From the NCBI GenBank assembly GCA_002104905.1, contig MCFE01000804.1, positions 1-34,302 on the forward strand: a DNA stretch of 34,302 nucleotides. Direction: 5' to 3'. Under the pieces are notes generated by a model. The model was not told the origin of the DNA and ran no database searches. It saw only the letters and a program-made list of their open reading frames with translations. The translations under genes were made by a program, and so were the position numbers. The stretch's first letter is position 1. Each line of letters begins with the position of its first letter. Below, in pieces: positions 5,567 through 34,302 of this stretch. This DNA is from Basidiobolus meristosporus CBS 931.73 (Eukaryota; Fungi; Basidiobolomycota).

Positions 5567-8306
5567 TTATGCGGGTTGCGATTTTCGCATCATCTTGGAC
5601 CACTCTGACAGAACACGGTTAGAGAACGATCGTACAAATACAATGGCATAGATAACATACTTAAACCACAAGAGTTACAGAGGGTTCCGGGGCCTTCTGG
5701 GCCTTTTCGCCATTCAGGAGAATCAATACGCTTGCAACTTGTGCAGCATTTGTCTTGGATGGCCACTCTCTTTTTCTAAACAAAAATGAAGCAATCAATC
5801 AATTGGCCCCTAGGGGACAGTCAACGATGGTGCAAACCTTCTTCTTGGGCGTCATTGACACCTTGTGCTCTTCTAGTTTCTTTATATCCTCATTCAATTG
5901 TCTGTTGGCCAACTTCAGAAGATGCATCTCATACTGCCAATTTGCTGGGTGGATCTCATTTAATATGCTGAACAAGTTGTCAGCATCCATTGAGACCTCA
6001 TCCGTTTGCGGCATTGGGGACGCTTCATAAGGTGCTGAGTCAAACCCTTGGATCAGCTCAGACTCCATTTCACGGGTTTGGCAGAGAACAAATGCAACTC
6101 CTCCCTGGTAGCCGATATTTCCGGGGTAGAACACACTGGTTAGATTTATGACTTCGCCTTGCTTTGTTCTCGCCTTATGGTGAAGCTTCACTGTAGTCCC
6201 GGTTTGTACGTTCCTTAACGATTCGCTTAAACCAGAAAGGTGCTCTTCTGGAAATATGCATGCAAGATTGGTCTGTTGTAGTTCCGAAGCTGGGTACTCG
6301 AGGAGATTTTCACACTGATCGGTGATATGCAGGATCATTCCTTCGTTAGAGAGCTTTGACCACATATCCATATCGTTTATGCCACCGCTACTTCGACTGA
6401 TGATTCCCCGAGAAAGCCTGTAAACCGGCCGTGGACGTCCCGAGAGTATAATATACTTCCGGCTTTTACCGCGCTCCGAAAAGAGCTTACCAGTAGCCTC
6501 AATCCACATGTATCCCGAGAACTTGCGTTTCGCACGATACAGCATTGTCACAGTGTCGTTCTCACTGTTCGCTTCCTTGATTTCGCGCATTACAGGATTC
6601 AAGTCACTAGGCTCACAGATTTTCGAGATTGACTGGCCAACAAGCTCTTCAGGCTCATACTCCAATAATGTCTTGCAGGATGTGGAGGCGTATGAAAATA
6701 CTCCTTTCAGTGAGAGCACATGAATAAAGTCATCTGCTTCATCGAGCAGCATCTTATTCCAGATCTGGGCGCATTCATCTTTGTCCTCCTCATTCGAAAC
6801 ACCGATCAACTGGTAAAATTCCTCTGAGAGCAGCGACTGTGGGAGGGTTGGTAAGGCTACCTCGCATAACTCCTCCGGCTCAATCTGCGTCAAATCTAAC
6901 AAATACGCCCGTTAATCTCTCCGCAAGTGTAAAATGGCCACGTCTCGAACACAAACCGGATTCTAGTAGCGGGGCGATCAACGGCAACGCCTCATTTTGC
7001 ATATATGCTCCCTCTATAGTGCAATCTATGGCGTTAGCAACAAAGATAAACATCAGGGGCCCACTGGCGATGTACCTTGAACTTTCTGTCGAATTTCTTT
7101 AGGTCTTTCAACAAAATCCTGGGGCCACAAGGATGAGTATCAGCACACCGAGCTGAAATACAAACCACACTTACCACTTGGAATCCAACAAAATGCGTTA
7201 TCCCCCCGCCGTGCATCGAGATCGGGATCACAGTGACCAGGTTCACAAAAGCCTATCGATAGCAAACAGTTGAACAGCCGGCTCACCCACGAGGCAACAT
7301 TCCACGGCAATCTGGACTAACCTCGCCCGATTTTTTGTAGTTCACCAATGACACCTGGATTTCTTTTTTCTGGATGATATGGGTTTTGAGGTTGTACACT
7401 GCGTTGTTATCTGTATATCGACGACGAGACCCCACTGTAACTAGCCCTTCAGGAGCCTGTAGAAATCGGGAGTTTCGTCCCAGCACCTCTTGAGTGGAAT
7501 ATCCCGTCAAGGTTTCAAATGATTCACTCGCATAGATTATTGGTAGATCGTCAGCAAGAGCGTTCGCTATGAACATCCAAGTTAGTATCGTCGATTCAGG
7601 GGTTGGGAACTGCCGAATAATCTATGGGATATGTGAAACAGCCCCTGCCCCCAAAAGCAAGGGAAACGAAGGTGAATGAAAACGGAAGTTTTCATATATG
7701 AAACATGTTTTAAACAGCCAGGCAAGAAGTGAGTATTCCCTACCTACAACAAAGGACGCACTCATGTCAACAGGGCCAAGGTTGATCTGAGGATTAGGCC
7801 TAGTCAATTGAGGTCAGTCATCAGCACAAGGCCCACAATAGTAGAGCTCTTACCTGGTAGCTACTTTCAGCTGATTTGGACGCAAGGCAAATACTTTTAG
7901 TCATCCGATTCAAGCAGCTGGTGACAGTAAAGGCCTACCAGCACTGTGATCATGTCTATGCCAGAGCTAGAATACACCCCACGATACTGAGAATCGTCTA
8001 GCTGTTTCGCCATATCTGGGATGGCGCCGGTGCCATCGTTACCACCTTCACTAAACCCTTCGTTGAATTTGGGCACGCCGCTCATGTCTTGAAAAACAGA
8101 AGCGTTAGAAACGAACAATACCACCATCCAGCCGCAATATGGATATAGGAAAGCACTGCAGGTTTACCAGACATATAGGATGCTTGGGGGGTGGGGTCGT
8201 AAGGATATAATGGAGGGTTTTGACCATCGTTCATAAGGGCATGTTGATTATCATCCATCCACTGAACATTGGCACAGCTCTGCTTTATATTCTGCGTCCT
8301 CAACAT
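5567..8306 (-). CDS. wc-1: White collar-1-like LOV-PAS-PAS-GATA transcription factor (about 11 exons) with a non-canonical LOV domain
   Basis: Spliced by eye: [77 protein letters not shown]...[20 protein letters not shown]...[33 protein letters not shown], coiled coil [15 protein letters not shown] and basic KKKKKR follow. The GATA finger [26 protein letters not shown] (C-X2-C-X18-C-X2-C) lies in exon 5661-5775; stop TAA at 5567-5569. The start codon at 8306 is less certain. Confidence 0.93.
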
Positions 8307-9797: not shown

Positions 9798-10772
9798 TTA
9801 GTTGCCTTCGGCCCATTTACCAGACTTCTTTCTATGGCACTTGGTAGGCTTAGGCTTATTGCTGCACTTGCTAGGTTTAGTGCTGCATTTTTTAGAGTTA
9901 GTATGTCTAGGCTTGGGAGGGCACTTGGTGCCACTGTTTGAAGGAGTAGGGCCTAAGGTTGTGAGTACAACAGAAGTCTGGACAACAGTTGAACCAACCG
10001 TGGTTGAGGCGGTGGCATTTTGGGTGATGGTCAGAGTTGGAGCTGAAGTAATGGATATCGCACTACTCGAGCCACTGACACTACCGCTGCTTGAGGGGGT
10101 TATTGTAATCAAACGCATGAGAGAAGATGTAGCAATGTGGCGAGTCACAAGAGTGGAGCCGAAGGTCTCAATAAATGTGGATGTAGAATCAAACTGGGTA
10201 GTGGTCGAGCCTCCATCCGTTAGGACTATTTCTTCTCCTTGCCCAATATGGTGAGTTACGGTGGGGCCGGGAATGGTGTTGATAACCGACCTTGAACTTA
10301 GTTGTTCTATTACAGTTCCAATCGCGATACCATTACTTGTGGGACCGGTGATGGTGGTGAGGTCGCCTGCAATCCCACTGGTCACAACTGTAGCCACCAC
10401 ATCTGAAGGAAAAGTCTCTGTGAAATAAGATGACCACAGAGTTCGGCTAATGCTAGTAAGTTGCAGAGAAGCCTCTACTACTGAGCTAGGAATCTGCCGG
10501 GTGAAGGTCTCTCCAGGAATAGTCCGTGTGACGAAAGAGCGGCCATCGTTTTCAGTAATGGTAGCATCGCTGACCGTTTCGGAGTAAGTGATTGCGTCAA
10601 TGGTAGCGATCTGGGTGTGCGCAGATATGTAGTCGGTAACCATTTCAGTAGGAACGAACCAGGTAATCGTTTCCGACGGATACGACAAAGTGACGGTTTC
10701 AAGCACCTGCCCTTGCGCCAAACAGGCAGAACCCAGCAGAGCAAAGAAAAGTGATTGTTGGACTTTTGTCAT
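9798..10772 (-). CDS. Secreted Thr/Ser-rich protein, paralog 1 (unknown family)
   Basis: 324-aa intronless ORF with a signal peptide (MTKVQQSLFFALLGSACLA), a Thr-rich core collinear with the neighbouring paralog, and a basic tail with four KC motifs. Confidence 0.85.
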   Translation of the reverse strand: MTKVQQSLFFALLGSACLAQGQVLETVTLSYPSETITWFVPTEMVTDYISAHTQIATIDAITYSETVSDATITENDGRSFVTRTIPGETFTRQIPSSVVEASLQLTSISRTLWSSYFTETFPSDVVATVVTSGIAGDLTTITGPTSNGIAIGTVIEQLSSRSVINTIPGPTVTHHIGQGEEIVLTDGGSTTTQFDSTSTFIETFGSTLVTRHIATSSLMRLITITPSSSGSVSGSSSAISITSAPTLTITQNATASTTVGSTVVQTSVVLTTLGPTPSNSGTKCPPKPRHTNSKKCSTKPSKCSNKPKPTKCHRKKSGKWAEGN

Positions 10773-26458: not shown

Positions 26459-29232
26459 TTGGTTAGAAGTGAGCAACAGAAAATACAAGTATGGTAAGCT
26501 ACGCTAGACCAAAGACGACCAAAAGAAGTGTAGTGTTATTGGGGTTATACAGGTGCGAAGTGGGAAGGGAGAGTGGGTGGTGAATCAAAGGCTTGAAAAT
26601 ATAGGAAACCAAGAAGTGCAAAAAGGTGGTAATCCGTTCGATTATTATAATAGATCCACGCTGCTTCCGCATGTAGGTAAATTTCCGCTTTTGATCAACA
26701 AGTGGATTACCAAGTGCAAGTTGGTCCGAATTCCCGATAATTTGTCATATTGATCGGCTCATCCGCACCCAAATCCGTTCCTTTATATTGACGCCTCCAC
26801 AATGATCAAGGTGAACGGAGGGTGCATATCAGTACACAGCGGTGATCACTCAAACACCCACGTTTGAAACGAAGCTTGAAACAGCGGCGCCCAAGTGTTG
26901 TCTGAGTGCCGCTGTCCTGGCTGGGCCTCGTAACATACGGACAGCTAGGGTTGCTCGTTCTTGAATAGATCGTTTCCTTAGCACATGCTGTGAAATCGTG
27001 TCAGACTCATGGACTGCTTATGCAGTCCGCAATGGCAATCAATATCCATGAAATCTTCTCAGGGACAACGGCCAGGAGTTGACCATGCATGATATCAATG
27101 TGGATGATGGCCTTACAGCCCTAGGGTGTCTACACTTGGCTTCCATCGCCCTGCCCACAATACCGCTGGAATGAAGTACCAGGCAGGAAAGCCTCCTGCG
27201 TGTTCAGTTAGGCAGGCTCCTGGCGGTTGCTCCTTAGAGCCGCGCAACTAGCAGCTCCTTTATTCCTTAGTCTAGACGCTGGCTGTTGCCCTCCAATCGT
27301 CGATTAACTTTGCTCATATATTAGTCATACATTGGACAAATGATCAACCTCCTAGTTAGGTACACAATCACTTCATGATGTCACTGAACCACGATGGCAC
27401 CGCACCTTCAGCCTAGAACCGAATCCCGAGGGAAAGGCCCACCGCGTTTCAGCCTGGAGTAGGCGTCGCCGCCGCAAGTGGATTCGGACGGGAACTGCTG
27501 GAGGCCACAGCCTACGTACCGGTCAATTGCCTTCAATGCGATGTGTCCGGCTGAATTCCAGTCAAGCTGTTCCACTCCGAAATTTCTGCGGAGATCCTGA
27601 CCTTATTTTGGCGGGGAGATTTATTTGTGCTGCGTGAAGCTGGATACTGAATGGACACATCTTCCAGCGCGGTATAACCGTCGCCCCATTGGCTCCATTG
27701 GCTCTATCCCTCACATGAATCGTCGGCCGGACACCAGCCAGCGCTTTTGCAAATCAACCCCCGAATTTCTCTGATCCCAAGCCCAAGTCCCTTGCGACAT
27801 TCAGCAACGTGGCTTGTGGTACTCCAGTGCAAGTGTAGCCAACACGCATCCACGCCAGTCTCCAGCATGCTTACCAACACTCCCTGCTGTGCTGGATTCA
27901 AGCTCAGCTCAGCTCTACATCAACATGAGAAATGCAAGAGGGATCAAGCATCAGCTAAGCCATCGTCGCCTTAAGCGGGAACACTCCCATCAGGCTGATC
28001 ACTCCAGTTCTCCCATCCCCCTGTCCACACAAGGTGATGATGGGTGACCCCTGGTGGGAAGTAGTGGAATACCTGATTAGTATTTGCTGGTAACAAACCT
28101 ACCCTAGGTGCGATTATCACATCTGCATGCCATGATTTGGTATCTGGGCCAACCAGCACCCTCGCGCCCAATTCTCTCATCCGGTTGTGGTTGCTGATAA
28201 CTATGGTCGCACAAAAGAAGTTTGGCGCTCAGCAATCACTGCTATAGATGCATATGCATTAGGACTGCTCAAAACTAACCAGCATGGAGTCAGGTGAGAG
28301 GCATCGAGTTGGTGTCCAATCAGGCCAGCTGCTGGGGTGCCCTATTGGCTGCTAGTATCGGGCAGGGCCAATGTGTAGGTGCTTTAGAGCCTTTGGCCGG
28401 ATCCTTGCAATTCATGATTTGGCTAGAGCTAGTGTTGAAGTGTAACACACTGTAAATGCAAGTTGGTGGATTTCTCTTTGGCAGAGCATTGGAATGATAG
28501 GATCCAGCGCTTTGTTGTGTATGGCCTTCAAATTATTGGTGACCTGATACTGGATGGCTTGGTTCATCTCTAAAACCTCCTTTTGTTCAATCACCCACCA
28601 CTGCTACCAGGATTACACTCCTTGAGAAATGGGGTGGTAATATCACCAAATGAAGTCCCTATCAGGGATTACAAAGTTGGAATTTGCTAGGATTGCTTGA
28701 TGGTCAGGTTTAATCCAAGCTGAGCATCCGCTGATTTTTGTACAATATCTGATGGGTTCTGTAAAACATTTCTAATCACAGAATAGAGATGCTGGCAAAT
28801 CAAAACAATGACAAGTATAACCTCTGTCCAAATTTGCTGTCTGAGTGGACCCAGAATACCCCTCACTAAAATGCTGGGTGTCCTGAATTACAATTACCAG
28901 CCATAGGTAATATATCTCAAGCCATTGCACTGTCAAATGTCTACTATTACTGTCACTAGAAGCACTTTCCCAACCTCCATTTTCTGGAATGGTAAGTGTA
29001 AATATCAAAACTCAAAAGTGTGCTTATATAGCACTAGGAGAAGCAAATCAACCATAGTCAGCTGCTAAGTAGAAGCATTGGAGACAAAAGTTCCTTAATA
29101 TTGAGATGCTTCTTGCTAGAGAAAAGCAAAAGCTCAATCAACAATGATGAGTTACCTTTTACCTTGGCATGGCACACATATGATATAATCAGATGCCCTT
29201 AGGAACAAAAGCTGTCAGATGAGTCTGTGGGT

Positions 29233-29446
29233 TGTTGTAAGAGTCTTGGAGATATTGGAAGTGATTTGGAGAACAAGTAGATTATGTGGCTTTCACTTAA
29301 TGATTTATTGAATGTAAAAGTAGTATTTATACTTTTACCTGGTCTTGGCATTACAAACACATAGGATAGGTTAAGGAAGGTCCCAAGAACATGTGTGCAA
29401 AGTTTGGGGCTGTTTGGACAACTTTGAGAATTTTCATGTTCTGGGT
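29233..29446 (-). repeat. Inverted, 5'-truncated copy (214 bp) of the copia LTR
   Basis: Reverse complement of 29581-29794 with about 7 mismatches by eye, all transitions. It ends exactly at the LTR CAACA terminus on the minus strand. Confidence 0.9.
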
Positions 29447-29539
29447 GTTTTAAAAATTTGTATTTCCACCTAAATATTCACCTAACTTAGTCACTTAGAT
29501 CATCACCTTCAAATCCTAGAGAATACTGACCAAATTCCT

Positions 29540-29794
29540 TGTTGGGATTTACTTAGAATATTTTCACCAAAATACCAGGTACCCAGAACATGAAAATTCT
29601 CAAAGTTGTCCAAACAGCCCCAAACTTTGCACACATGTTCTTGGGACCTTCCTTGACTTATTTTACGTGTTTGTAATGCCAAGACCAGGCAAAAGTATAA
29701 ATACTACTTTTACATTCAATAAATCATTAAGTGAAAACCACATAATCTACTTGTTCTCCAAATCACTTCCAATATCTCCAAGACTCTTACAACA
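29540..29794 (+). repeat. 5' LTR of the copia element (255 bp, TGTTG...CAACA)
   Basis: TGTTG at 29540 and CAACA ending at 29794, an internal TATAAA (gtataaata) and aataaa, immediately followed by the PBS and gag. Confidence 0.85.
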
Positions 29795-29806
29795 GGTTAT
29801 GAGCCC
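29795..29806 (+). promoter_or_regulatory. Primer-binding site GGTTATGAGCCC (Ty5/copia half-tRNA-iMet type)
   Basis: Directly abuts the LTR CA end. Matches the GGTTATG(A/G)GCCC PBS recalled for Ty5 and Drosophila copia. Confidence 0.8.
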
Positions 29807-29825
29807 CAAGCTGTCACTCTCTGCA

Positions 29826-32679
29826 ATGTCTACCACTGCTATTACTGGAATTTTCCCTCTGCTGAAAAGTTGGATGGATCTAACTAACAAGTGTGGAAGG
29901 TGAAGATGAAGACGCTGCTACAAGAAAGAGGCCTTTGGGATATTGTCATGGGAGAAGAATGCCCTTCTAAAAACATGGGAGAGGAAGCCTTAGAGTACCA
30001 GAAGAAAGAACAAAGTGCCTTTAACTGCATTTGCCTTAATGTCAAGGACAAATTGCTAATTCAATGCTCAAGAGCAAAAACGGCAAAGAATGCCTGGAAA
30101 GCATTAGAAGACACCTACCAGTCATGTTCAGCTGCCAAGAAAATGTATCTGAGACAAAAATTCTTTACTACAAAGATGCTGCCAGGAGAAGAAATGAAAA
30201 ATCTAATTAACAGAATTACCCTGCTGGTAGATAAGATGGAATCTGTGGGCGTACCAACTACTGATGAGGATGTGATAGTTACCATCCTGAATAGCCTGAC
30301 AGACAAGTGTCAGGGCCTTGTATCAGCCCTAGAGTCCAGAACTGAAGATTTGACCTTAAATTACGTATATGGAAGGCTCCTGGATGAAGAATTAAGAAAA
30401 TCAAGCGCCAATAAGAAGGAAGAAGAAAATGCTTTAATAAGCAATGATAACCAACAAAGGAGGTACCCAAGACCCTACAAAGGCAACAGCAACCTATTTT
30501 GCAACTACTGCAAAAGGAAAGGACACACATCAGACCGGTGTTTCAAAAAGAGAGATTATCAGCAAAAGAAGCCTGAATATGGAAATGCTGCAACAACTGA
30601 AGATAGACTATTCATATCTGCACTAAATATGACCACAAACAAGGATTCTCAGACGTGGTATATTGACTCTGGAGCTTCTCAACACTTTACACACCAAAAA
30701 GAACTTTTTACCCAATATCAAGAAATTCCAATTAAGAAGGTTTTCATGGGTGACAATAGAACACTTGATGCAGTGGGAGAAGGAACTATCCAAGTAAACC
30801 TTAGAAGCAGTGAAGGAAGCCATACACTGACCTTTGAAGAAGTACTCTATGTACCAGAAATAGCCAAGAACCTACTCTCTGTAAGCAAGGCCACAGCAGA
30901 AGGACTCAGTTTCAGTTTTGACAATTCTGGATGCAGGATCACTGATCAAAATGGTACCCATATTGCTTTGGGCATCAGAGATCAAAATCTATACAAGTTG
31001 ACTTATATTCCATCATATCTGGAAGCCAATATAAGTAACTTAAATGAAGAAACACCAATGCTTTGGCACAGGAGATTTGGGCACATCAATTTTGATTATT
31101 TGCGTAATATGATCAAAGATCAGCTAATTTCTGGAGTGAAAATTGATCCCCCAGCTAATTTGGAGCACTGTGAAGCCTGCATATATGGGAAACAAGCCAG
31201 ACAACTGTTCAAGAGCTCTGGGTTAATCAAAATTAAGAAAAAATTAGATCAAATTCACTCAGATCTGTGTGGACCTATACAAAATTTATCCTTAGGCGGG
31301 ATGAAGTATTTAATCACTTTTATTGATGATTATACAAGATACACATGGGTCTACTTCATGGAGAGAAAGGAAGAAGCTCTGTCTAAGCTCAGGGAGTTTA
31401 AAGCCATGGTGGAGAGAGAAACTGGTGAAAAAATCAAGAAAATATGCTCTGACAATGGTGGAGAATATACCTCAAAACTCTTCATCCACCGCTGCAAAAT
31501 TCATGGGATAAAGCAAGAGACTACTGTACCATACTCCCCACAGCAAAATGGAGTAGCAGAACAAGCTAACAGATCAATAATTGATATGGCAAGATCTATG
31601 ATCCATGATCAAAAATTATCCTATGATTTTTGAGCGGAATCAGTTGCCACTGCTGTATACCTTAAAAATAGGAGTTATAACAGAATACTTTGTGATTCTA
31701 CTCCATTTGAAGCATGGTATGGATACAGACCAAGTGCAGAACATTTAAGAATATTTGGGTGCACAGCATATGCCAAAAAACTGGTCGGAAATCAGTCAAA
31801 ATTTGAGCCAAAAAGTGTAAAATGCATATTTTTGGGCTACTGCAATGAGAGTAAGGCATACAGACTCTACAATACCAAAGCAAAGAATCTTATCAAGTTT
31901 AGGGATGTGTTGTTTGATGAAAATTCAAAATTCTCACAAAAAATGACATCAGATGATGACAAAAATTTGATCTCAAGTCCACCAATTGTCAGGATTGAAT
32001 CAGAGCAAAACAATGAAAATTTTTTCACTCCATAGGACTCTACAACTGTGGTTCAGCCAGAATCAGTGCCCAGGATTATCCCAGAAGTGATCATTCCAGT
32101 ATCAAATGCCCGGAGGTCCAATCGGACAAGAAATAGCCCAAATTACTATATTAATGAGGGTACAAACTTAGCCTATGCCTATTCAGTCCATATTGATGAA
32201 CCCCAGACTGTAAAAGAGGCCCTAAATAGCCCTCAGATGATGTTTTGGAGATCTGCAATGACTGAGGAATATCAGGCCCTGATGGAAAATCAAACTTGGG
32301 ACTTAGTCAAATTACCAATCAACCAAAAATCAATTGGATACAGATGGGTCATCAAGACAAAGTACAAGGCTGATGGTACAATTGAAAGATACAAAGCTAG
32401 ACTTGTAGCCAAAGGATACTCTCAAACAAACGGACTTGACTATACTGAGACCTTTGCACTGGTAGCCAAGTTTAATTCCATCAGATTAATATTGGCTATT
32501 GTAGCCAAATATAAGTTTTTTATTCATCAAATGGATGTAAAAACTGCATTTTTGAATGGAGAACTTGATGAGGACGTGTATATGGACCAGCCTGATGGGT
32601 TTGTTGACCAAGATAACCCCCATTTGGTCTGCAAGCTTAAAAAGTCACTATATGGTCTCAAACAATCACCGAGAGCCTG
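29826..32679 (+). pseudogene. Copia gag-pol pseudogene
   Basis: ORF pieces 29891, 31832 and 32048 share one frame, broken by TAA (29885), TGA (31631, expected Trp) and TAG (32033). A probable frameshift follows the ATG at 29826. RT is cut at KQSPRA-W and RNase H is absent from the window. Confidence 0.9.
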
Positions 32680-34302
32680 TGTTGTGCATCAACATTTAAA
32701 ACTTAGCCAATTTTACTCTGTTTGAAAATCTGGTACCCTAACTGATTTTCCCTAACCCAAACATAACAAATCCCAGTTACAGTTTATTTTATCCCACCTC
32801 AGAATCTATTTTTAGCTATCACACCTGATCTATTTTCAAATGGTCATTACGTTATCAACCTATCTGCCAAGCCTTCCCAGGTGATTAGTCATCTGAGATC
32901 TATCCAACCATGGTGCAGTTGCCAAGACATCAGTTGATTGATGATGTAATTTTCATTTATCTTATGCACCTATGAATACCCAAATTGATTTCAATCAATC
33001 CAGTCCCTTGGCGCTTAATAATTCAACTTGATCAGAAAAGTATAAATAAAGTTTACTGAACCTTTTGGTTTAGTGTGTGTCTCAACAAAATTAAGATTCT
33101 CTCTCAGCAAAATAAGAATCCAACATTTCCGTTCCAGTTTCTATCCAAGCCTAGTATATCTAGCACTCCAAAGAACACCAAGCCTAGCCTGCCTAGCAAA
33201 CAAATATCATTGCCTTTATAGCCAACCCAGCTATATCCAAGACCAATATTAGATCAGAATCTTCCTGCTAATATTTCCGCCACTCTCTGACAATTCTAAG
33301 ATTCTGCACTTAATTGTCCCTTTGGTTCAGTTAAACCATTCAAGAGCTTTATTACACTTTCTCTTGGATACAACATTTTTTTTGTTGAATTCCATTACAT
33401 TCAGCCAATTAGAAGATGTCCTCAGCAGCAAGCAATCCAAACCTTCCCATGTTGGAAGAAGCTAGAAGAAATCAGGAAGAACTTACTGAACAGCTTGAAA
33501 ACATCATGCTTGAAAGAAATACCATGATGCTTGAGCACTCAAAGCTTGCCAAAACAAGATCTGATAATCACCGTAGAGATGAACTCCTTGAAGTTATATC
33601 CGGTTACCAAGATGAAATTGGAATAATTAAGGAAGCACTGGAGAATATTGCCATAGTAATTGACAGCATTGAAAATCCACCAAGCCTTGCTCTGCATCAG
33701 CCACCAAGAAGTCATGCCTTTGAATCCTCCAGATCTACATCTCCTTCTAGACCTGCCCCGGTGGTTGTCCCAGGATCCTTGGCTGTTTATGCTGAAGGCA
33801 CCAATGCCATCAAGAATCCAACTGAGTTTCTTTACAAGTTTAGTCACGTCTTAGCTGCACACCAGCTAGACCCTGACACCAACTGGGCTAGACTTCTGCC
33901 TCTCTGTCTCACAATGCAAGATGCTGACTGGGTTGAAGTGAACATTCCTTCCAATAGTACGTGGAAAATTGCCCAAAACCTCTTTTGCAGCCATTTTGAA
34001 GATCCTCTCAAGAAAGCACATCTGAACTGCAACTTATGGAAAACTAAAATGCAAAAAGGTGAATCTGTGCAACACTTCTGTGATAGATTCCAAAGACAAA
34101 TGAGATTAGCTGGAGTTAGTGATGATAATCCATCGCTTACTGCTCATTTTCTTTCAAACTTTTCACACCAGCTACAGAGCAATATTGCTATTGTCAAAGC
34201 ATGCAACCCTGCACGTACCTATGACCAGATCTCAGAGATATGTACACTGGCAATCACCTTGACTGCAGCTGTTAGCCAGACTTCAGGCAGCTCAACCCAA
34301 TA
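32680..34302 (+). mobile_element. Nested LTR retrotransposon (Ty3/gypsy-like), 5' part only
   Basis: Copia RT homology stops at a TGTTG start (32680), followed by an AT-rich LTR-like segment with tataaataaa. Candidate CAACA ends lie at about 33087 or 33125, and a gag ORF follows. The LTR end is unresolved. Confidence 0.75.
33416..34302 (+). CDS. Retrotransposon Gag (gypsy-like capsid), running off the window
   Basis: Uninterrupted frame of about 295 codons from ATG 33416 (absent from the ORF track because no stop is reached): coiled-coil N-terminus, NPTEFLYKF, WARLLPLCL, TWKIAQNLFCSHF and MQKGESVQHFCDRF (major-homology-like). Confidence 0.8.
   Translation, partial: MSSAASNPNLPMLEEARRNQEELTEQLENIMLERNTMMLEHSKLAKTRSDNHRRDELLEVISGYQDEIGIIKEALENIAIVIDSIENPPSLALHQPPRSHAFESSRSTSPSRPAPVVVPGSLAVYAEGTNAIKNPTEFLYKFSHVLAAHQLDPDTNWARLLPLCLTMQDADWVEVNIPSNSTWKIAQNLFCSHFEDPLKKAHLNCNLWKTKMQKGESVQHFCDRFQRQMRLAGVSDDNPSLTAHFLSNFSHQLQSNIAIVKACNPARTYDQISEICTLAITLTAAVSQTSGSSTQ

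Follow-up and report, generated by a model that had tools for sequence, protein, structure and literature searches.

The window analyzed here is the entire 34,302-base-pair scaffold of Basidiobolus meristosporus CBS 931.73, the minus strand of which encodes a paralog of White collar-1 (WC-1) with serine (Ser) in place of the adduct-forming cysteine (Cys) of canonical LOV domains. This gene, K493DRAFT_293436 (P0001; 640 amino acids; UniRef name 'White collar 1'), is a 100% match to the window. Exact splice mapping of the protein placed the coding sequence at 5567–8234 on the minus strand in 11 exons, with exons 1–6 at 8234–8168, 8087–7939, 7870–7854, 7799–7744, 7566–7322, and 7252–7175, and exons 7–11 at 7118–7076, 7013–6957, 6895–5838, 5775–5661, and 5604–5567.

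The domains of the encoded protein are arranged in the order that is typical of WC-1, namely an FAD (flavin adenine dinucleotide)-type LOV domain with an N-cap and an extended loop, PAS-B, PAS-C, and a C-terminal GATA zinc finger. The N-cap and LOV domain comprise residues 58–207 (7110–7983, minus strand, exons 2–7) and were delimited by alignment with Neurospora VVD (147 residues with zero gaps, including the extended FAD loop; E = 1.6e-40) and by a match to the Pfam family PAS_9 (residues 101–205, 2.8e-27), both of which identify a LOV-type PAS fold and establish true homology; the same segment matched 115 LOV sequences in the PDB at E < 1e-10. PAS-B lies at 6432–6749 on the minus strand (residues ~287–392; Pfam PAS_3 1.7e-20, PAS 1.8e-14) and is followed by a PAS-C region at 6063–6395 on the same strand (residues ~401–515), which aligns with PAS-C of WC-1 relatives and includes a weak Pfam PAS_2 match at residues 422–484. 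The GATA finger (5585–5745, minus strand; residues 601–635, C-x2-C-x18-C-x2-C; Pfam GATA 1.6e-11) is interrupted by the last intron and preceded by a basic stretch, KKKKKR. The initial annotation, a reading of the bare DNA, had called the gene a WC-1 homolog, and this LOV, PAS, PAS, and GATA architecture bears that out.

Identity and Expression of the Serine Codon

Minus-strand positions 7482–7459 read GGA CGA AAC TCC CGA TTT CTA CAG and encode GRNSRFLQ, in which the TCC codon at 7469–7471 specifies Ser129 at the position of the adduct Cys (VVD Cys108), exactly as first annotated and as present in the public gene model. The adduct-forming Cys of a canonical LOV domain is replaced by Ser in both of the Basidiobolus species compared here (the codon is TCC in B. 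meristosporus but AGT in the ortholog from B. ranarum; a Cys-bearing paralog pair has TGC/TGT); by strict definition the domain is classed as LOV-like ('LOV*') rather than as a canonical LOV photosensor.

TCC is a single base from TGC, and an error of one base in sequencing or assembly, or a polymorphism of the strain, could turn a TGC codon into the one observed. The initial annotation had named the recovery of TGC at this codon as an outcome that would overturn its claim, but TGC was present in no contig. Contigs from runs X1 and X2, the probable source runs of the assembly, differed from the window at no letter. A 1955-nucleotide contig from a third run (X3), which is complementary DNA (cDNA)-like, had eight of ten introns removed, all GT..AG on the minus strand, and contained 0 other letters across 7321–7566, the Ser codon included. 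In total, none of the three runs (two DNA-like, one cDNA-like) had a differing letter, and Ser is also encoded, by a different codon (AGT), in the independently sequenced B. ranarum. We consider the error or polymorphism explanation to be negligible. No contig from a further run, X4 (6% of words), was placed on the gene at 90% likeness.

An intron-free contig arises solely from spliced RNA, and the X3 contig therefore indicates that the gene is transcribed and that the Ser codon is present in its transcript. The fully spliced form is the only one represented in this B. meristosporus contig. The contig includes the 17-nucleotide micro-exon 3 (7854–7870, minus strand; N-cap residues ~73–78), which falls between both sides of the 7801/7939 joint in that contig. 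Exon sizes of K493DRAFT_293436 recur in the B. ranarum ortholog and in the canonical paralog pair, and the micro-exon has the same position and length at L001 8374–8390, L002 1921–1937, and L003 2420–2436, the loci of the ortholog and of the canonical pair, respectively. Three isoforms are annotated for the ortholog in B. ranarum, in which intron 7 is retained, the last intron is retained, or the start lies further downstream (L001 9198–9363, 10541–10769).

The annotated start of the protein is at 8234, and the B. ranarum model begins at the equivalent position. An in-frame ATG is present on the minus strand at 8306, 24 codons upstream, and a short, low-depth X3 transcript contig covers exon 1 and extends to 8375. 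The protein may thus start earlier than annotated.

Residues of the flavin pocket were compared in columns of 128 other WC-1-type LOV domains, with VVD numbering taken from the gap-free alignment. The adduct column was occupied by Cys in 128/128 of these first-collected domains. Among 26 invariant columns, 24 were kept in the Ser gene, and the two exceptions were the adduct Cys (residue 129) and an aspartate (Asp) at residue 98. The flavin-contact residues N128, R130, Q133, R145, N172, N182, and Q203 are present in both species, and the motifs LVNYKK, FVNL, and VGFQ and the fungal extended loop are present in the window and in the public model; the asparagine (Asn) and glutamine (Gln) residues of the pocket that were originally described as retained are indeed retained when aligned with relatives, and so are the arginine residues. 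Gln203 (codon CAA, 7178–7180, minus strand), the signaling Gln at flavin N5 (VVD Gln182; Gln in 125/128 relatives), is kept, as is Tyr61 (VVD Tyr40, a dimer contact). VVD Met135 and Met165 correspond to Leu156 and Val186. All strictly conserved LOV residues except the adduct Cys are thus kept, as in the LOV* class, with the caveat that Asp98, invariant in WC-1 relatives, is Asn.

The Ser gene departs from its relatives at nine columns with conservation of 90% or more elsewhere, and all nine departures are common to both species. They comprise F66I in the N-cap, C92A at the hinge (VVD Cys71), D98N (VVD Asp77), C129S (VVD Cys108), D136E, P179A, and, in the linker after the core, L206F, Q209R, and Y226E. 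Ala92 is encoded by GCG at 7757–7759 on the minus strand (GCT in the ortholog), where 116/127 relatives have Cys, and Asn98 by AAC at 7562–7564 on the minus strand (AAT in the ortholog), where 127/127 others have Asp. The upstream changes that had been remarked on in MSASFVV|ANA, which spans the intron at 7743–7567, are these two replacements; they are real and specific to this clade. Codons of the same family are used in both species at eight of the nine changed columns, the exception being residue 129.

Orthology, Constraint, and Codon History

A search for relatives with the full protein and with its LOV region yielded 692 matches, from which 130 LOV-bearing proteins were compared. Cys was present in the motif of all 130 except K493DRAFT_293436 and a B. 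ranarum protein, K7432_004858 (P0046; longest isoform P0159), which likewise contains GRNSRFLQ. The two proteins (640 and 661 residues, respectively) are 82% identical overall and, because they also share an exon plan and the synteny of the upstream neighbor, are regarded as orthologs (hereafter, the Ser pair). The ortholog comparison covers these two species; a word search for further Basidiobolus orthologs with the 97-residue open reading frame of the LOV exon returned one unrelated 45% match.

As the initial annotation had anticipated for an early-diverging fungus, several WC-1 paralogs were identified: six in B. meristosporus and nine or more in B. ranarum. Best matches across the two genomes are 66–89% identical. 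Five of the six B. meristosporus paralogs are canonical and Cys-bearing. In maximum-likelihood trees, WC-1 proteins of Basidiobolus formed a single expansion (support 92), which places the Ser gene within WC-1, and the Ser pair was sister to two Cys-bearing paralog groups (support 98–99). The stem branch of the Ser pair was 1.07–1.1 substitutions per site compared to 0.38–0.45 for the sister groups, whereas its tip branches were short (0.13–0.18). These branch lengths indicate that duplication gave way first to a burst of change and then to conservation.

To quantify this conservation, codon alignments were constructed for the Ser gene and its B. ranarum locus (L001) and for a control pair of Cys-bearing orthologs, P0003 and P0002 (loci L002 and L003). 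The proportions of non-synonymous (pN) and synonymous (pS) differences were used, since pS exceeded 0.75 in most regions and a Jukes-Cantor synonymous distance could not be computed there. Synonymous sites of the Ser pair are saturated (pS ~0.78 overall), and introns are 53–67% identical. Even so, the N-cap and LOV domain (residues 58–207) is 96.7% identical between the species (pN 0.025), with 82 identical codons, 63 synonymous, and 5 non-synonymous. It is the best conserved part of the protein, compared to 90% identity for PAS-B, 76% for PAS-C, and 48% for the N-terminus. The LOV domain of the control pair is 94.0% identical (pN 0.029), and pN/pS was ~0.04 for LOV and 0.13 overall in the Ser pair versus 0.03 and 0.10 in the control pair. 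The Cys-less N-cap and LOV domain is constrained at least as strongly as the LOV domain of a photoactive paralog. In the LOV exons of the Ser pair (7110–7983 versus L001), pS was 0.59, clearly below the value of 0.86 obtained both for the remainder of the gene and for the LOV domain of the control pair, which could reflect codon bias, constraint at the RNA level, or chance.

A redundant duplicate that is drifting toward loss of function, under relaxed selection or as an incipient pseudogene, might be expected to have a long stem branch and to lack a key catalytic residue, as this gene does, and a sixfold paralogy leaves room for such redundancy. However, neither the 640-codon frame nor any splice site has been disrupted in either species despite saturation of the synonymous sites between them, the pN/pS values match those of the canonical control pair, the terminal branches are short, and a spliced transcript contig exists. 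Drift toward loss is accordingly a very improbable explanation. The combination of absent expression and signs of pseudogenization, which had been put forward as a second way in which the original claim might fail, was not observed; the gene is spliced and expressed, and no signs of pseudogenization were found. Since the Cys-less LOV domain is at least as constrained as its canonical counterpart, pseudogenization and sequencing error are excluded. Collectively, these results identify K493DRAFT_293436 as a real, expressed, and selectively maintained WC-1 paralog without the capacity to form the canonical adduct.

The codons for Ser129 differ between the species in a manner that bears on when Cys was lost. 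Conserved Ser columns number 46 in the Ser pair and 48 in the control pair, and of these 94 columns only that of residue 129 shows a switch of codon set. Both TCC and AGT are one step from the Cys codons of the paralogs, TGC and TGT. A history with Cys still present at the split of the species requires two Cys-to-Ser replacements, while the alternative, in which Cys changed to Ser on the stem and the codon then switched by way of threonine (Thr) or Cys, requires three amino-acid changes; the history with the fewest changes is therefore that Cys was present when the species diverged. This suggests, within a comparison of two species, that the adduct Cys was lost independently in each. The loss probably came after the earlier burst on the stem branch, during which the hinge Cys was changed to alanine (Ala), Asp98 to Asn, and other residues were replaced.

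A stronger form of this history can be proposed, in which the hinge was rewired by descent and Cys was then removed twice (TGC to TCC and TGT to AGT) because the adduct had become disadvantageous and not simply unnecessary. The product would then be a transcription factor of a eukaryote that harbors a sensor dedicated to flavin redox state or photoreduction and maintained by selection. We regard this proposal as speculative and, taken as a whole, rather improbable. If true, it would be the first natural WC-1 to use a Cys-independent mechanism, which has so far been shown only in engineered VVD and YF1.

Among other features of the scaffold, the upstream neighbor is a gene for a secreted, Thr/Ser-rich protein of 324 residues (9798–10772, minus strand), with a syntenic B. 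ranarum ortholog at L001 5012–6022 on the plus strand (69% identity). A second gene similar to this neighbor is located further upstream at L001 3196–4167, and neither has a Pfam family. The G+C content of the ~6-kb scaffold end (28001–34302) is 38–41%, compared to 45–51% elsewhere.

Possible Functions of the Cysteine-Less Domain

The initial annotation had offered two functional alternatives, an adduct-independent light or redox sensor and a light-blind or competing subunit, and the evidence presented here, being that of sequence, would not by itself decide between them. The reading that we favor, although we hold it to be evenly poised, is that the product of the Ser gene is a flavin-bound sensor that responds independently of an adduct, through photoreduction or redox state. 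Because every flavin-contact residue is conserved across a divergence that saturates synonymous sites, we infer that flavin is bound. The adduct-independent sensor is favored because Gln203 and Tyr61, which are not required for flavin binding alone, are also kept. In support of this reading, Cys-less VVD dimerizes and signals through the neutral semiquinone and requires Gln182 and Tyr40 to do so (PMC4682037), and a LOV1 domain with Cys replaced by Ser retains flavin mononucleotide (FMN) and yields a flavin radical in light (PMC11089501).

In the mechanism that we envisage, flavin would be retained in the Cys-less pocket and would undergo one-electron reduction, either to a light-driven neutral semiquinone or in response to cellular redox state, leading to protonation at N5. 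Gln203 would relay N5 protonation to the N-cap, as was shown experimentally for the equivalent residue in Cys-less VVD and YF1, and output would pass through PAS-B/C and the GATA finger, presumably with a WC-2 partner. The protein might then serve as a slower, less sensitive, or redox-gated branch of an expanded white-collar network.

Several observations weigh against an adduct-independent sensor. Flavin binding, photoreduction, and partner binding are each predictions for this protein, and strong conservation of the flavin pocket would also be expected if flavin were a mere structural cofactor. The conformational change of VVD in light depends critically on Cys71, and VVD Cys71Ser shows none detectable on photoactivation (PMC5397860), yet the equivalent residue here is Ala92; this objection is tempered by the 11/127 Cys-bearing relatives that also lack the hinge Cys. 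The invariant Asp98 is Asn, and F66I, D136E, P179A, L206F, and Q209R are additional changes in the N-cap and C-terminal linker. The Asp98Asn replacement and these five further changes may have rewired or disabled the signal relay. Lastly, photoreduction in Cys-less VVD proceeds with a quantum yield ~1/10 of that of adduct formation (PMC4682037).

Many of the same observations can be accommodated by a light-blind white-collar subunit, in which the LOV domain, with or without flavin, is a structural or dimerization module. Such a protein could be a GATA factor with constitutive ('dark-function') activity, or a competitor, titrating WC-2 or binding to the LOV domains of the light-sensing paralogs, with a tuning rather than a sensing role. 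The dark and clock functions of Neurospora WC-1 are independent of LOV photochemistry. The Ser gene has replacements of both the adduct Cys and the hinge Cys of the VVD-Cys71 type, the invariant Asp is changed, the N-cap and linker are rewired, and the stem branch, at more than twice the length of those of the sister groups, points to a functional shift after duplication. PAS-B, PAS-C, and the GATA finger are at the same time intact and conserved, and five canonical Cys-bearing paralogs are available for light sensing. Against a light-blind role, Gln203 and Tyr61 have been kept across saturating divergence although Gln203 is dispensable for flavin binding, two other Cys-less WC-1-like lineages have lost this Gln, and conservation peaks in the LOV domain (96.7% identity versus 76–90% for the PAS domains), beyond the apparent need of a passive scaffold. 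We consider a light-blind subunit to be a credible alternative, albeit one that we lean against, and continue to favor an adduct-independent sensor.

To evaluate how rare the loss of Cys is, an exhaustive HMMER search was conducted with residues 58–210, which recovered 14056 proteins at E ≤ 0.001, and the best 150 representatives were taken. The resulting count comprised 302 proteins, 275 of which had a LOV match over the adduct column, and this column was Cys in 290/298 LOV matches. Besides the Basidiobolus gene, only two WC-1-like proteins among the 275 lacked Cys. The first, P0177 (Logan SRR22388151; L004 6001–7818, plus strand), is encoded by an intronless gene and comprises 605 residues; its motif is GRNARFMQ (Cys to Ala), its hinge Cys is also replaced by Ala ('FSASIL'), it contains GIDM, its signaling Gln is replaced by Cys, and it is without a GATA finger. 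The second, P0224, is a 258-residue fragment from a 3.8-kb ENA contig with an ascomycete-like WC-1 N-terminus, in which the motif is GRNSRFLQ, making it another natural instance of Cys replaced by Ser, and the signaling Gln is replaced by leucine (Leu). In the tree, both formed independent long branches, P0177 near Glomeromycotina and P0224 nearest the lichen ascomycete Caeruleum heppii. The caution that was first expressed about the uniqueness of the Basidiobolus domain was justified by these two lineages. Loss of Cys in WC-1-type LOV domains thus appears to be rare but recurrent, and among the three Cys-less WC-1-like lineages, the signaling Gln is kept only in that of Basidiobolus.

The top HMMER matches were P0168 (4197 residues, JGI/IMG) and P0169 (3055 residues, Logan), each with ~10 tandem LOV-like stretches. 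One repeat in each is without Cys, which is replaced by Ser in P0168 and by Leu in P0169.

Comparison With Known Systems

Engineered proteins have been shown to signal through LOV domains independently of Cys, and the same has been suggested for some LOV-like domains of prokaryotes. The Ser gene would provide a natural test case, in that it encodes a eukaryotic WC-1 transcription factor with a Cys-less LOV domain under selection equal to that on its photoactive sisters, with canonical paralogs in the same genome that are usable as internal controls and with a codon history that points to repeated loss of Cys. It bears on how duplicated photoreceptors diversify, whether toward light sensing, redox sensing, or pure regulation. 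Optogenetic or fluorescent tools could be built on the domain as a natural FAD-LOV scaffold that forms no adduct; if the protein is light-blind, it would instead exemplify an intrinsic modulator of the white-collar complex. A search of the literature identified no paper on a Cys-less WC-1, including P0177 and P0224, and none on the Cys-less repeats of P0168 and P0169, and white-collar genes of Basidiobolus were found there only as gene counts; the accessible part of the supplement text of Yee et al. (PMC4682037) contained no fungal or white-collar terms.

Within the White collar-1 family, which includes Neurospora WC-1, Phycomyces MadA/WcoA/WcoB, and Mucor Mcwc-1a/b/c, the Ser gene shares the N-cap, the FAD-type LOV domain with its 11-residue loop, PAS-B, PAS-C, the basic stretch, and the GATA finger. 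It is positioned within the zygomycete WC-1 tree and is 52–67% identical to other members in LOV. It differs in having Ser for the adduct Cys, Ala for the hinge Cys, and Asn for the invariant Asp, and its protein is short (640 residues) and without poly-Gln regions. Another comparison is with the canonical K493DRAFT_91526 (P0003) and its B. ranarum ortholog (P0002), which have the same exon-intron plan, 17-nucleotide micro-exon, domain order, and GATA finger and are under purifying selection of similar strength. Unlike the Ser gene, however, these paralogs encode GRNCRFLQ (TGC/TGT), MSCAF, and an Asp-bearing FVVSDA, and their identity to it is 47% in the PAS region (a 367-residue open reading frame) and 64–65% in LOV.

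The engineered VVD-III (C108A), a Cys-less VVD that was studied along with YF1 C62A (PMC4682037), is a fungal FAD-type LOV domain with an N-cap and without the adduct Cys, in which Gln182 and Tyr40 are kept, as are Gln203 and Tyr61 here. The VVD-II/III background also has residues other than Met at Met135 and Met165, like Leu156 and Val186 of the Ser gene. In contrast to engineered VVD, the Ser gene is natural, has Ser rather than Ala, has its Cys71 equivalent replaced, and encodes a LOV domain that is embedded in a DNA-binding, multi-PAS protein and does not stand alone. The same replacement of Cys by Ser has been made in Chlamydomonas phototropin LOV1 (C57S; PMC11089501), where FMN is bound and light gives a semiquinone radical and not an adduct. 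That protein was made in the laboratory by mutating a plant/algal LOV domain of the FMN type, and the radical partner is a nearby tryptophan, whereas the Basidiobolus LOV domain (residues 58–207) contains no tryptophan.

Natural Cys-less LOV* domains (~70 GenBank entries, including halobacterial BAT-LOV*; PMC4682037; bioRxiv 10.64898/2026.07.30.741865) resemble that of the Ser gene in keeping the flavin-binding set except for Cys and in keeping Gln, and they have been proposed to integrate light and redox signals. The characterized examples (BAT-LOV*; 2026 preprint, bioRxiv 10.64898/2026.07.30.741865) differ in being from halophilic archaea, with Cys replaced by Ala, His, Pro, and others, and BAT-LOV* is without the FAD loop. 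P0177 and P0224, in turn, are also of the WC-1 type, with an N-cap and a LOV domain without the adduct Cys and with long branches, and P0177 shares the change of hinge Cys to Ala and GIDM with the Ser gene. They are nevertheless independent lineages in which the signaling Gln has been lost (to Cys and Leu, respectively), and P0177 has no GATA finger. Against this background, what is new here is that a white-collar transcription factor of a eukaryote contains a natural LOV* domain without the adduct Cys.

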